Position numbers and translations under genes: made by a program. Of a stretch of DNA of 6,386 nucleotides, positions 3 through 6,386 are shown piece by piece. Source of the DNA: Zygophlyctis sp. KS116 (taxonomy: Eukaryota > Fungi > Chytridiomycota); NCBI GenBank assembly GCA_054661495.1, contig BAAFSQ010000442.1:1-6386 (forward strand), given 5' to 3'. The notes under the pieces are model-generated. The model was not told where the DNA came from. It ran no database searches and worked only from the letters and a program-made list of their open reading frames with translations. Numbering within the stretch: the stretch's first letter is position 1; each line of letters starts with the position of its first letter.

Positions 3-464
3 AAAGATGTGAAAATCGCCGTACTCAATGAACAGCTCAAGAATTCGAACATGGAAAAGTTGATGGAGAAGCAAGCATATTCTATTCGAGCCGCTATGGA
101 GACTCTCCTTCTCAAAAAATATCCTGAAAAACCTAGAAAGATGGAAGAAAAGTTAAAGAAATATTGGGAGGAAGATCCGCAGTTGAAGGAGACTTATTTG
201 AAATTATGTGAAAAATTTAATTGTTCCAACTATGCTCACTTAGTACCTTCAAAACTGTACCATTCTCTGTCGAGTAAAATTCACGGAGGAGGTTTTCCCA
301 TTAAGTGCAATATCAAAGATTCGAGTTTGTCTGCTGCGGAATGGTCTTTTGTCATTGCTGTATTCAAGGAGAATCTTCCAAACAATGGTTTTATTGTATT
401 TGATTCCGAAGACAATCAAATTGATATTGATACTTTTAATACATCCAATAACAAAGTCTGTTGA
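3..464 (+). CDS. 3' part of an uncharacterised protein (coiled-coil-like start, then a helical domain); probably begins upstream of the window
   Basis: Over 150 open codons with protein-like composition. The track start is a GTG and the frame is open to the window edge (KDVKIAVLNEQLK...). TGA at 462-464. Confidence 0.7.
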   Translation, partial: KDVKIAVLNEQLKNSNMEKLMEKQAYSIRAAMETLLLKKYPEKPRKMEEKLKKYWEEDPQLKETYLKLCEKFNCSNYAHLVPSKLYHSLSSKIHGGGFPIKCNIKDSSLSAAEWSFVIAVFKENLPNNGFIVFDSEDNQIDIDTFNTSNNKVC

Positions 465-670: not shown

Positions 671-686
671 TTTTTTTTTTTTTTTT
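671..686 (-). repeat. Poly(A) tail (A16) marking the 3' insertion junction
   Basis: Uninterrupted T16 on the plus strand directly downstream of the 3' UTR and AATAAA. Confidence 0.9.
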
Positions 687-942
687 AATTTATTAAGGCC
701 ACTACAATATCAAAATCCCATATATAAACATTTTCATAATCCCTTTTGATGGTACATCTGTCCATGATAAAGTTATTTGGTAGTTTGTATATCCTCTTTG
801 AGAAAGTACATCCTATTTAAAGGAAGAGAATTTTGATTCCAGCACCTAGAGTATAATACTTCTAGTGTCTCATGATTTTGACTTTGGCAAAAATGAATTT
901 TGCATTCCACTGGCGAGATGCCTCTTTGAGGTCCCAATTGTA
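687..942 (-). other. 3' UTR of the retrotransposon (256 nt)
   Basis: Lies between the ORF2 TGA (943-945) and the poly(A) tail. Confidence 0.8.
689..694 (-). promoter_or_regulatory. Polyadenylation signal AATAAA
   Basis: The minus strand reads CCTT-AATAAA-TT-(A)16, so the signal almost abuts the tail, as in L1-type elements. Confidence 0.7.
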
Positions 943-1620
943 TCAGTCCTTGAAATTCAACTTTGGTCCCAGTTCAGACACTGGACCTCCTGTTAAGCGC
1001 CCAACTCTCCCAGAGTCGCCTTCTTCCCCTTCAACTTCATCCCCCTGATTAGGATGAAGTTCCTCCCTTGGAACAGTGAACTTGATTTTTAATTTTGGTG
1101 GTTTACGGATCTCATTCTGAGCGTCATTGTTCTTTCTTGTTCTGTTTAATAGAATTTTTGATGCTTGATCTATATTTGTTTTTAGAGAGATTTTAGCTAT
1201 ATTTATCAATCTTATTCTTATACGTTTATTGTGAGTGTCGTTATCAAAATCCTTTTTCCTTTTACGATTATACTTCTGATTCTTATTTTGTACAGCTATA
1301 CATCTACTCGACCATATGTGTTTATATATTGTTGAGAGCCAACAATCCATTGTAAAATGTAGCCAAAGCATTGCATTTTCTTTGGTTCTATTGACTGTTT
1401 TAAAGTTCTGAATGAGATTGTCCGTGATTAATCCCTGTGCAACTTTTGTCTTTAAAAATTCTAATGTATTCTGACGTATTCCTAGAATGAACATCAAGTG
1501 TTTAAATGTCGGTCGATTTCCCTGATCATACAATATCTTATATCCTTTGTTAGATATTCTCTTTTCCATATTTTGGATCGTGTCTTGGTACAGAATTGTT
1601 CTTATGTTTTTATTCTTAGT

Positions 1621-1671
1621 ACATTCAAATATATGTGAATGATTCTCCTCTATTAAATTACATCGTGCACA
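1621..1671 (-). other. C-terminal CCHC zinc knuckle of ORF2
   Basis: CARCNLIEENHSHIFEC = C-x2-C-x8-H-x3-C, preceded by QLSTLD (an LPT-like motif) as in LINE ORF2 C-termini. Confidence 0.85.
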
Positions 1672-2019
1672 TATGTTATCATCAGTATACTTTTTGTGCG
1701 TTGTATTCCACTTGAGAACTTGGTCTAATGTACTTAACTGTTTTGTGATTAATTGTATACGAAAGTTTTGTTCCTTTAAGTTTGAGACATCCAAGAAATT
1801 AGTTTTGTCCATTCCTGTTTGGATTAATTTCAAAGTATTTGGAATATTAAACTCGATAATTTCTTTCCGGACAAAATATCTTTGAGTAATGTCCTCGTTG
1901 TCTTTCTGATTTAATTTTTTAAAATAAGTACTTGGATATTCATTGATTATTGCCTCATTCTGGAAGATGTATAGTTTATTACTTGAATTAGGGACTATGT
2001 AACTTGGGTGTTCCGAGTT

Positions 2020-2450
2020 GGCCGCTGCTTTAGCCAAGTCATCAACTTCATTGTTTCTATAATCGTTACTATGACTTTTTACTTTTGTAAATACCGGGGG
2101 TATTTGGAATTTTTTCAATTCATGGCATATCTCTTCTATAATATTATAATTGATAAACTTAATACGGGATCTCTCTTTTGTAATTAAGCTATAATTTGTA
2201 ATAGAGGTAATTGCAGCCTGAGAGTCCGTATGAATATTTAAACTGACATTACCACTACATTTTTTAAGTGCAATTAAGATTGCTATCAATTCCGCCTTTG
2301 TTGACGATGGGTTCAAGGTATCAACTCTGGTTTTGATTTGATCGATTTTAGATTCATTGTTCCAAAAGGTAACAGCTGCTCCAAGTTTATGATTATTATT
2401 CCCTGTTTGATCGAGAAACAGACTACCATCAGTCCACACCTTTATCTTAT
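2020..2450 (-). CDS. Ribonuclease HI domain (boundaries approximate)
   Basis: WTDGS (D 2428-2430), STKAEL (E 2290-2292), HTDSQ (D 2224-2226), KVKSHS (H 2071-2073), NNEVDDLAK (D 2041-2043): a full D-E-D-H-D set. Confidence 0.94.
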
Positions 2451-3289
2451 GGTCTTTTATATTATTGATCAAATTTATTTCTTTGTGTTTGAAAGCATTA
2501 TAGTATTCAAAGGCATGGTCTAATACAATATCCTCATTTACTAGTATGTATTTCTTGACTATATTTTGCCACCATTGTGGGACTGTGTCATAAATCTTCT
2601 TTTTAAAGATTCTCCTATGTTGATTTCTTAGTTCATTAAAAGAGATTATTTGGTTATTATTAGATGGCCTTATTATCATTTGTTTCTTGAGATCAAGATG
2701 GTATAAGACTTTTTGTTCTGTAGTGTATTCTTGATGTGGTATTTTCCTTATGATCTCTGTTATTGGGTCTTCATTCCCTGTCCTAATTTGTATATTATTA
2801 AGATGTAAAATATCGATTATATATTTCAACAAACTCATTTGGGTTTTCAGTTTTATCGGACGAACTATTAGAGGAAGAGGACATTTTATTTTGTGTTGTA
2901 ATTTCTCTAGAGCTCTAATAAGTATTTCATTTGTAAAAGTAGTACTTCTAATAATAGTGTATACATCCGATAATGTATAATTCGTTCTTAATTTTTCAAA
3001 GGAAAAGAGATTTATAGCGAAATTTTTATCATAAAAGATGAAATTCTTTGAGTTTTTTGGTAGATTATATTTCATTTTGCATAACCTTCTTAGTTTATTG
3101 TCAATTTCCTTTACGAATGTTTTAGACATTGGAATTAGTTGTGATTTATATAATAGTTGTGGAATTATTACAGTATTGATCAAATGGCACATTATCTTAC
3201 CTGGAATGTATTTATATTGAATTGCATTAATCTGTTTTGTGAGATCGTTCAGAATTTTTTTAGTTGTCATTTTATAATTCCCATCCATT

Positions 3290-4201
3290 GACCAATGGAC
3301 TCCTAGAATTCTTACAAGCTCATTTTTTGGAACGATTTCAATCACCTTATCTCTAATCTTAAATACATGACTAGATAGGTCCTGGTTGCTAATTATTTTG
3401 GATTTATTTTCGTTTAAATACATTTTATTTCCTTTGAGGAAGTTGTCAATATGATTGATCATGGTCTGTAGTTCTTCTGGATTATCTGAGATTGGATGTA
3501 TATCATCTGCATAAGCTAAGGCTTGAACACTAATGTCTTTGTATAACTTATATCCCTTCATTTTTTGTAAATTAATTAGTAACACATCATAAAAGATATT
3601 CCACAGTATTGGAGACATAGGATCTCCCTGTGGTAATCCTCTTAGCAATGATTTCTTCTGTGAGTCCATTCGGGGTATTAATTCGGACTGATCTCTTTAG
3701 GATTTTCTCAACTTGTTTGATGAAAAAGGTTGGAATTTTTAGTCTTTTTAGTGATGAGACAATACTTTCAAAAGGTACACTATCATATGCCTTTTGGACA
3801 TCTAGTGTGGCACTCCAGAGCATTTTTTTACTTAACTTTGCATCATCAATTAAAATCCTTAAAATACATAGTGGGTCTTTTGTACTACAATTAGATTTGA
3901 AACCAAAATTATGTCCTTGTAGTAGTCGATTATTTTCTATTACACTTGTTAATCTGTCAGTTAAAATCTTGGAGAACATTTTTTTCATTGTGTTATTAAG
4001 AGTTATCGGACGTAATTTACTCAAATTCCCGTCCCAATCTTTTACTTTGGGAATCAGGACAACAACAGCTTTGTTTAACTCATCTGGAAGCTCATCCAGA
4101 AACAAGAATTCATTAAGTATCTTTACTATAAGTTGTAAAACATTTTCATTTTTAATCAATTGTATTAATTCATTGGTAATTTCTGATGGGCCTGGACTCT
4201 T
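3290..4201 (-). CDS. Non-LTR reverse transcriptase domain, split by the frameshift (boundaries approximate)
   Basis: KSPGP, LIPK, LRPITL, NFGF, LDVQKAYDSV (3782-3802 core), GLPQGDPMSPILW, LAYADD (YADD at 3502-3513), LNENKS, RILGVHW. Confidence 0.96.
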
Positions 4202-4969
4202 CTACTTTGGTAGATTTTTAGTTAATTCTTTCACTTCCTCCATTGTGATGGGATTGGCAATTTCATTGAAGATACACTCATTAATTTCAAGTTCTGGAAA
4301 AAGAGTTTCATCTATTGTTTTGTTATCTGTGTTTTTATATAAGTTATAGAAATGATCTTGAGTTTCAATTAATGTTTGTTTCATATTATTGATAATTTCC
4401 CCATTTTCTTTCCTGATAAAGAATACATCACCTATCTTAAGTTTATTTTCAAAGATTGAATCAATTTGTCTCTTTTGATTATGTAAAAATGAGGTGGCTC
4501 TACGGTCCATTAATTTCCTAATTCTCTTTTTCCTTTTCTTTTTAAGTCTTCTATTGATGCACTCTTTGATCTTACTAATCTTGAAATCTTGCTTCTGATC
4601 ATAAGGATATTCTGCATTAACAAATTTTTTCCAATATATTTCTATTCTGTGATCACTTATCTCATCTAAATAGGCTGAATCTAAATATTTAATTATCTTT
4701 CTAAAGTTTTGTGTAAATTTTTGAGGGATTTGTTTTTGGTCGCTTTGAGTTAATTTTTTCGGGAGAGTTGTTTTTGCTATGTTCCTTAATCTAGTCGAAA
4801 ATCTATTGTAATCAATATTCTGTTTATTTAATAAGAGGAGTTCTCTGTTTAGTTGATTATTATACTCAATACAATCATTTTTCTTGATTTCTTTGTAGTC
4901 GATATTTAAAATTTTCTTGTTAACCTGATTTATTCTGATCTCTTGCAATTTTATCTCCTTAAAGTCAGA

Positions 4970-5764
4970 CTCCAGATCTAAACATATTGGTAAATGGTGA
5001 TGATTACCGATTCTATTCAGATTTCGGATTCCTTTTACATTCTTGATCAGATTCTCACTTATGAATGTCAGATCGATTCTTGATTTAGCAGGTAATTCCT
5101 TACCTATACTAACTTGATGAGTAAAACTTTTTGTGGCGGGGTAGATAAATCTAAATATATCTTTCAGATTATATTTTTGTTTCAGAAAATTTGTGATTTT
5201 TGGTGAACCACATTGTTTTTTCCAGTTTTTTAATCCTATTTCACTGCTGTCATAACCATATTCTTTATCTAAGCTCGGATTTTGAATCTCATTGAAATCC
5301 CCTTGAATGATCGTTCGACTCTCATTCGATTGATTTAACAAATTTAAGTTAATAAATTTTATGATATTCTTTTGAATTGATTTATAGTCCTTATTTGATC
5401 TATTTGGATTATATATAACAATGTACTTGAGGTCTAAATTGCTTTTTTTCTCTTTGAAATGAAGTCCGATTCCATGTCCAGATAAAAAATTTTTTTCGAT
5501 CAGAAAAGGAATAATTTTCTTGGAGATAATTACTAATGTCCCACATCCAAATTTGGGATAACTCAAATTGTCATGATCTGATAGAATAGCATATTTTTTA
5601 TTTATGTTTTCATTTAAAATATAGTTAATTCCTTTTGGGTCTTTGATCCATGTTTCGGAAATACTAAAGATCAGTGGTTTTTCCTGAGTTAATATATTCT
5701 CAATGTAAATTCTATTTATTTCATTATTTAGACCAGATATATTCCAATGAATAAAATGTGATGT
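4970..5764 (-). CDS. Apurinic/apyrimidinic-like (APE/EEP) endonuclease domain (boundaries approximate)
   Basis: Ordered EEP motifs: HWNISGL (W at 5744-5746), FSISETW, IYNPN, IIQGDFNE, LKDIFR, SFTH, SRIDLTF, and HHHLPI in place of the usual SDHxP. Confidence 0.93.
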
Positions 5765-6233
5765 ATTTCCATTTATGGAATGCATCAATTTATTTGATAT
5801 GGATCTATAGAAATAATAACTCAAAGAGTGAAAGAAATTAGTAAGAAGTTTATTATTCAAATTCTTTTTTACGATTGAGATGGATTTTCCCGTTTTCCCA
5901 TAAAATTTCTCATTCAATTCATTCGTAAAAGCTGATGTATTAGATTCATCTTCCATTTGATTCAGTCCGGACATTTCTTTTAGTTGATAAAAATTTTTTT
6001 GATTAAAATTATTTCTGTTTTTAAAAAGTTTGTGGCTTATCAATTTGTGGCTGTATTTTTTGAGGCTTGTTTGGTTGCTTGGACATCTCAGGAAATAGAG
6101 TTTTGTTTTTATAACTTCTATTTTATTGCATTTTGTTAAAATAAAGTTGTCTCTGTTATATATTTTGAGATAAAATATATAGTTCATTATTATTTCTACT
6201 AAAAAATTTATTATTTTAGATATATTAGATATT

Positions 6234-6261
6234 TTATATGTAAGGTTATATGTAAGGTTAT
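6234..6261. repeat. 12-bp tandem duplication (TTATATGTAAGG x2.3), encoding NLTY-NLTY on the minus strand
   Basis: Read directly from the sequence. Confidence 0.85.
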
Positions 6262-6386
6262 TGTCGTTCGAGTCATTGCCCACAGATGTAAAATAAACTA
6301 CACCATGGGTGTAGCCTTTACTATACGGGGAGAAGACAAGCTTCTGGGCTCTATTTGTACTAAAAAATATTATATTCATCGCGTTT

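Follow-up and report, generated by a model that had tools for sequence, protein, structure and literature searches.

Two kinds of system come closest to what we describe here. Peptides of the 2A/StopGo type (D[V/I]ExNPGP) occur in the N-terminal region of ORF2p of the elements L1Tc, Ingi, CR1, L2 and Rex1 (PMC3708506). The other is the cleavage motif ‘CM’, NKxMHxxNGN, right after which the capsid proteins of the arthropod toti-like viruses IMNV and Omono River virus (OmRV) start (PMC7968656). In OmRV, whose second site reads NHVMHALNGN, cryo-EM places the starts of two chains at P789 and I244, immediately after the two sites (PMC7968656); that paper gives no mechanism, and an earlier one speaks of cell proteases. 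Our literature search found the motif string in this one paper only, and never in connection with retrotransposons or with viruses that are not toti-like; most subscription journals lay outside the search, and an earlier description is possible. Here, we report an exact match to this motif, NKLMHSINGN, directly in front of the endonuclease of a LINE, where it is probably a genuine processing signal of the viral type, analogous to the 2A peptides of L1Tc and Ingi.

The window, that is, the whole stretch of 6,386 nucleotides analysed, is occupied from position 671 to 6386 by an APE-type non-LTR (LINE-type) retrotransposon, and the motif is a minus-strand feature within it. As far as the window extends, a single reading frame runs through the element, apart from two lesions, and the domains follow each other on one strand in the order leader, APE endonuclease, reverse transcriptase (RT), RNase H, Cys/His cluster and poly(A). 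The succession of APE, RT and RNase H on one strand is that of the I / Tad1 / Ingi-like architecture, and L1Tc and Ingi have it in common with the element. The features that the argument below relies on are the following:

6379..4202, minus strand: open reading frame of 725 amino acids, with the leader of about 198 residues, the AP-endonuclease domain and the linker to the RT
5795..6386, minus strand: leader; in the frame of the motif, at least 195 codons precede it without a stop up to the window edge, the first ATG being at 6377-6379
5783..5785, minus strand: ATG of M199, which is one of the fixed residues of the motif and, in the rival view, the candidate start of the EN-RT protein
5765..5794, minus strand: NKLMHSINGN, amino acids 196-205 of the frame at 6379..4202, an exact match to N-K-x-[M/Q]-H-x-x-N-G-N with the predicted scissile bond between N205 and T206
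4973..5764, minus strand: AP-endonuclease (APE/EEP) domain, amino acids 206 to about 469, first beta strand 207-213, catalytic Asn N213
4202..4204, minus strand: in-frame TAG stop (LPK-stop-KSPGP) between the endonuclease-RT linker and the RT, a sense codon in relatives
4159..3587, minus strand: open reading frame piece in the same frame as 6379..4202, first half of the RT
3295..4051, minus strand: reverse transcriptase, Pfam RVT_1, split by the frameshift
about 3638-3640, minus strand: 1-nt frameshift that splits the RT between AKR and GLPQGD
3669..943, minus strand: open reading frame with the rest of the RT, RNase H and the Cys/His cluster
2020..2448, minus strand: RNase H domain, PF00075, E=6e-14
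1621..1671, minus strand: Cys/His cluster C-x2-C-x7-H-x-H-x3-C downstream of RNase H, read from sequence only
671..686, minus strand: poly(A) of 16 A, the 3′ end of the element, with unrelated flanking DNA beyond

The copy is slightly damaged, young but dead, unless the stop and the frameshift are assembly errors. Searches and folding were run on each of its three ORF pieces alone; the pieces were concatenated solely for amino-acid frequencies. The Cys/His cluster is a possible zinc knuckle of the kind typical of this LINE group, and a C-x2-C ... H ... C segment resembling it in outline is present in three relatives (P0003, P0008 and P0012). The 3′ flank was searched for the second copy of a target-site duplication, and none was found within the window; the 5′ end of the element lies beyond the window. 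The G+C content is about 30%, and the closest named proteins are distant ‘RNase H-like’ proteins of Rhizophagus, at about 26% identity.

A sequence-only reading of this DNA had placed NKLMHSINGN right before the endonuclease, and translation and coordinates agree with this: the residue in front of the motif is S195, T206 (5762-5764) is the first codon after it, and W212 and the catalytic N213 (5741-5743) follow, W212 seven residues after N205. That the APE fold starts directly after the motif is likewise borne out, the first strand running from residue 207 in the AlphaFold model and Foldseek recognizing the domain. The model, which was built on a 20-sequence alignment, has a helix at 176-200 that extends into the motif, a coil at 201-206 and a strand at 207-213, and its pLDDT is mostly above 90 beyond about residue 220. 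The top Foldseek matches of the domain are the human LINE-1 endonuclease structures 1vyb and 8sp7 (target-normalised TM 0.82-0.84), and the human L1 endonuclease 8sp5 has TGSTSHITILTLNINGLN aligned to NGNTSHFIHWNISGLN of the element. Pfam Exo_endo_phos matches from H211 onward, weakly and below threshold (E=0.0019). In the 20-sequence alignment N213 is invariant, and E242, D361/N363, D407 and D436 are invariant or nearly so. The motif thus lies at the junction of leader and endonuclease, a domain boundary, and in frame within a long open ORF, which continues for 725 codons from the window edge into the APE domain and the linker; the stop and the frameshift come further downstream. The position inside a long frame and directly before the next protein or domain is common to the element and the toti-like CM. 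The same reading had noted that the element has no DxExNPGP peptide, and indeed we found no 2A or NPG motif in any of the three ORF pieces, nor in the relatives.

That reading had also drawn a viral parallel, a similar MHxxNGN sequence straight after which the mature capsid proteins of IMNV and OmRV begin; it is published, in the form NKxMHxxNGN (PMC7968656). We scanned IMG/VR with the back-translated strict motif and obtained at least 120 contigs, compared with five for a scrambled-order control. One of the matches, 7611 nt long, agrees with OmRV-AK4 in published length and motif position. Among the matches listed, 123 of the 126 sites are in frame in long ORFs (median 1107 aa), and often 50-190 aa of sequenced ORF precede the motif, which would there release a short leader. 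After removal of contexts with flanks more than 50% identical, at least 88 non-redundant flank contexts remained, the flanks being unrelated, and codons vary freely at synonymous sites of the motif among the matches listed; this variation of synonymous codons within unrelated flanks indicates selection on the peptide. The carriers among the matches listed comprise picorna-like viruses (RdRP_1, helicase, 3C protease), viruses with Bunya_RdRp or RdRP_2/3, and toti-like viruses, four RdRp types in all, with virus families checked by Pfam on eleven ORFs. Two copies of the motif are present in one polyprotein in at least six cases (L040, L043, L057, L069, L107 and L168), and in at least two (L014 and L107) it comes 5-10 residues after an NPGP 2A site. 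We conclude that N-K-x-[M/Q]-H-x-x-N-G-N is a real, portable module in RNA-virus polyproteins, and that it is far more widespread there (L005-L124, L136-L188) than in the toti-like viruses in which it was described.

The seven ‘invariant’ columns of our viral table are fixed by construction, and tolerance was probed at three positions. The change of M to Q, found in 59 contigs, is tolerated: 45 of its 60 sites are in ORFs of at least 300 aa, with flanks of the same kind. The final N appears to be required, as the variant with K in its place gave six sites, none in a long ORF, which is background level. The N before G is rarely replaced by H (six sites, three of them credible), and the second OmRV site indicates that H can replace K. 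The degenerate pattern originally proposed, N-x(2)-[MQ]-H-x(2)-[NH]-G-N, was therefore close to right, with Q for M common and H before G confined to those three credible cases. Around the fixed residues the viral sites have soft preferences among the matches listed, for A/R at -4, K/R at -3, W/H/T/R at -1 and I/T/M/P at P1′.

The element matches the viral motif at all seven fixed positions (N, K, M, H, N, G and N). Moreover, its L, S and I at the variable positions and its T at P1′ each rank first or second in frequency at the viral sites among the matches listed. Three viral contigs (L039, L080 and L120) contain the very same ten residues, and the last of these also has T at P1′. The upstream flank of the element, Y-R-S-I-S, is atypical: the viral sites listed favour [A/R][K/R]x[W/H], and the element lacks the usual [K/R]x[W/H]. 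In the matches listed, T is found at P1′ in 17/88 and R at -4 in 12/88, so that these two residues of the element fit; S at -1, found in 5/88, is unusual, as are S at -3 and I at -2. A further difference from the toti-like system is that the viral chain starts were observed, whereas the carrier here is a retrotransposon, not an RNA virus, with a predicted cleavage site.

With the amino-acid composition of the element itself (N 10.4%, K 11.6%, M 1.5%, H 2.4% and G 2.9%), the expected number of matches to the strict N-K-x-M-H-x-x-N-G-N is 1.4e-9 per position and 2.5e-6 per element, and it falls to 1.5e-9 per element once the three variable positions and P1′ must follow viral preference as well. 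No match was obtained in 3000 Markov-2 simulated windows, both strands included. The motif match is thus far beyond chance. The main alternative that these figures address is nevertheless one of coincidence, in which an element rich in N and K, and in AT, came by the 10-mer through chance, translation starts at M199 or yields an uncleaved extension, and no processing takes place. The unconditional expectation per element, which is far lower still at this exact position, argues against it, as does the agreement of the variable positions and P1′ with viral preferences, while the atypical upstream flank counts in its favour. Taking these points together with those on relatives and on the leader given below, we consider coincidence unlikely, yet by no means negligible.

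The relatives of the element provide points in favour of coincidence. An exhaustive representative protein search gave 27 matches, among which P0024 (locus L003) is the sole close relative that covers the junction. Its identity to the element is 46% across the junction, 60% for the RT and 38-46% for the endonuclease. L003 is a decayed copy itself. In DNA and in protein, the two become similar about ten codons ahead of M199 (YYRS[IL]S); farther towards the 5′ end the similarity fades, and L003 may be 5′-truncated there. Its aligned site, YKMSHITHGK, keeps three of the seven fixed residues (K, H and G), no better than the background of 38-46%; the Met is not in the same column, and the last residue is K, giving the NGK variant that is at background level in viruses. 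Conservation of the motif in related elements, on which the sequence-only reading had made its proposal depend, is accordingly lacking: all 43 related proteins examined lack the motif, in loose as well as in strict form, and none of about 20 more distant relatives carries it. This differs from the viral motif, with its 88 or more independent contexts. A chance origin would gain from the three residues that L003 already has, the four further ones (three N and one M) having a chance of roughly 2e-5 per lineage with the element's amino-acid frequencies. It would also fit the many relatives whose ORF, as called, starts 1-35 residues ahead of the first strand of the APE fold. The leaders of the more distant relatives range from 0 to more than 800 residues and are mutually dissimilar; one relative, L001 (P0004), is a 5′-truncated copy without an endonuclease.

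Our attempts to find other copies covered several collections. A word-index search with the APE region gave no match, a profile of the window and P0024 run against a set of 5.8 billion returned only P0024 again, two metagenome scans (one with ORFa, one with the window/P0024 alignment) yielded no further copy, a scan of viral contigs with the RT-RNase H ORF gave nothing, and exact-product look-ups of the ORFs of the window met no record. The occurrence of the motif in LINEs rests on a single, defective copy, and our finding is provisional for this reason. The original proposal of a portable module shared by RNA viruses and LINEs has thus stood on the viral side, with at least 120 contigs and four RdRp types, while its LINE side consists of one element.

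The leader has a direct bearing on where translation starts. Its frame has no stop in 200 codons, as opposed to 24 and 22 stops in the other two frames, which has a probability of about 2e-11 at that stop rate, and its codon-usage score is weakly positive in frame (+10 bits) versus -125 and -130 out of frame. Because the leader frame is stop-free while the other two are so frequently interrupted, translation most likely runs through the motif, and the leader most likely belongs, or recently belonged, to the translated frame. The competing view, already allowed for in the sequence-only reading, is that M199 is simply the initiator of the EN-RT protein. M199 indeed lies a few residues before the first APE strand, as expected of ordinary ORF2 initiation, and 14 residues before the catalytic Asn, compared with 13 in human L1 ORF2p; in addition, the N-terminus of the human protein (M-TGSTSH...) aligns with NGN-TSH... 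of the element, including the hydrophobic strand that follows TSH. This spacing and this alignment make a plain ORF2 start a serious rival, and they count in favour of coincidence as a whole. In L1, however, a closed frame lies upstream and ORF1 is an ORF of its own, whereas all 198 of the 198 codons upstream of M199 are open in the element, which makes the open frame at least 198 codons long, and no separate ORF1 is visible in another frame upstream of M199 within the window. Coincidence is further weakened by L003, in which protein similarity reaches about ten residues upstream of M199 and the Met stands in a different column. The view that M199 is a simple initiator is hence weakened by the open upstream frame, and it keeps its place as a rival through the likeness to L1 ORF2p.

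The leader itself has few recognizable features. Pfam finds no meaningful domain in it, its model is mostly of low confidence with the exception of helix 176-200 (AlphaFold), and the exhaustive protein search aligned nothing upstream of residue 187, except in P0028, with one alignment of 22% identity that starts at residue 112. As the leader is without a homologue among the LINE relatives, it could be proposed that leader and motif derive from an RNA-virus polyprotein, part of which the element acquired at its 5′ end, perhaps through template switching during reverse transcription, and that the motif is a relic. LINE reverse transcriptases are known to make 5′ chimeras. In our data, however, tblastn of the ORFs of the element against the 190 motif-bearing viral loci gave no hit at E<=0.01, and the exhaustive protein search gave no viral match to the leader. 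With no similarity past the 10-mer to any of the 190 viral loci, the motif does not appear to have been imported together with a viral fragment. Moreover, the motif segment aligns with the LINE relative L003 in protein and DNA, and is therefore part of the element's own lineage. We have ruled against a captured viral fragment, which we regard as very improbable.

The reading that we prefer is that translation would pass through the leader, which is at least 198 residues long and not conserved, and on through NKLMHSINGN, a bona fide copy of the signal at which many RNA viruses separate their polyprotein products, and that the chain would be broken after N205, freeing the leader. The EN-RT-RNase H protein would then start at T206, one residue before the first strand of the endonuclease, and the motif would serve here as 2A peptides serve at this junction in L1Tc, Ingi and some CR1 elements. 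Whether the element in fact uses the viral signal to detach its leader from the EN-RT-RNase H protein after N205 is, in our estimate, evenly balanced. We infer that the leader is translated and that the motif is cleaved in this element and its host, and the manner of cleavage discussed below is likewise inferred.

It is conceivable that the motif is under selection and yet is no cleavage site in the element, either acting as a short linear motif that binds a conserved host factor, one that the viruses use too, or depending on a cleaving agent present only in the hosts of the viruses. Even for OmRV and IMNV no cleaving agent has been identified, and the only named relatives of the element are the distant Rhizophagus proteins. 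The position 5-10 residues after NPGP in L014 and L107 would also be odd if both signals did nothing other than separate proteins. Against this, the first residues of two OmRV proteins are placed by cryo-EM right after two copies of the motif, the motif occurs across very different polymerase lineages and sample types, and in the element it stands one residue before the start of a domain, which is the place of a separator. We judge a motif selected for something other than cleavage here to be rather improbable.

Returning to cleavage after N205, an autonomous signal, either based on the nascent chain and the ribosome or consisting of an Asn-driven self-cleavage, or else a universally conserved host factor, is favoured because the motif is found in unrelated polyproteins, in viruses with and without proteases of their own, and with seven of its ten positions fixed. 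A lineage-specific protease is less likely as the cleaving agent. The presence of the motif in very different polymerase lineages and sample types in turn suggests that the mechanism is available in many eukaryotes; that it functions in the host of this element is our assumption. Cleavage after Asn with a His nearby would be compatible with the chemistry of asparagine peptide lyases. These include the coat proteins of nodaviruses and tetraviruses, reovirus mu1 (cleaved between N and P), YscU/FlhB (between N and PTH) and inteins (after the C-terminal HN). In all of them the scissile bond follows an Asn, with a conserved His nearby, and site 1 of OmRV is also an N-P bond. The reactions of asparagine peptide lyases depend on the folded protein around the site. 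The viral motif, in contrast, occurs in unrelated flanks, which suggests a linear signal.

The comparison with 2A peptides is closest in terms of use. Both 2A and the viral motif are employed by RNA viruses of several polymerase lineages, and the element would have its signal at the same leader/endonuclease place, with the same presumed job, as L1Tc, Ingi and CR1. There are clear differences as well: the element has no NPGP, and 2A needs a Pro, whereas the viral motif breaks after Asn and leaves the next residue free (I, T, M, P and others). As P1′ is free, the motif is not a 2A in the strict sense. Furthermore, the 2A mechanism, ribosome skipping, is established, and 2A is kept in whole LINE clades, unlike NKLMHSINGN, which is known from one LINE copy. 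It is tempting to go further and to suggest that the motif could be a second autonomous, portable separating peptide, independent of 2A, used in at least four viral polymerase lineages, accepting almost any P1′ residue and recruited by a retrotransposon to detach its leader. We offer this wider proposal tentatively, as a possibility that falls somewhat short of an even chance.

If the reading is true, LINEs would have adopted at least two separators of viral type, 2A and NKx[M/Q]HxxNGN, at the same leader/endonuclease junction, which would support a need of single-ORF elements to release an N-terminal product. The motif would then act outside a viral context, and this would argue for an autonomous or universally host-supported mechanism. 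In practical terms, the cleavage chemistry of IMNV and OmRV would become directly testable with a harmless sequence, and co-expression would gain a useful alternative to 2A, a separator that imposes no proline on the second protein. Quite apart from the LINE, the spread of the motif in viruses can improve the annotation of processing sites in metatranscriptomic viruses.

Several other observations were made along the way. Three DNA-virus-like contigs of 64-140 kb (L009, L051 and L066, one of them labelled GVMAG) share the same 75-codon ORF with NKNMHLVNGN; this has no polyprotein context and is probably unrelated to the usage in RNA viruses. Past the poly(A) of the element, the flank (window 9-464 on the plus strand, and 465-670) has a 151-aa ORF on the opposite strand with no Pfam match, presumably a host gene. 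At the other end, roughly the first 100 nt of the leader (window 6290-6386, minus strand) have a higher G+C content than the remainder, and a short direct repeat (LTYNLTY at the protein level) comes after them. Scans of the window for tRNAs and with Rfam, this G+C-richer 5′ end included, gave no match; one possibility for the region is an internal promoter, and another is that the element truly begins near the window edge. In L003, positions 1-140 hold a frame with a P-loop-like GSSGMGKTQ upstream of the decayed relative, probably a host gene that was disrupted by the insertion or lies next to it.

A last observation concerns P0006 (locus L002, gene 815-4714), a LINE relative with 41% identity in the RT and a leader of 340 aa, in which ...HTRLRGG stands about 25 residues before the endonuclease. 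The RLRGG of this protein gave rise to the idea that the leader in our window is a decayed ubiquitin-like domain, which was rejected, as nothing in the window supported it. In P0006 itself, residues of about 265-330 weakly match ubiquitin and ISG15, in register and over the C-terminal half of each (E 0.18-1); Pfam finds nothing in this stretch, and a single-sequence AlphaFold model of it has a pLDDT of 36. The stretch is a possible ubiquitin-like fusion. Host deubiquitinases might cut it, and the same leader/endonuclease junction would then be processed by a different route.
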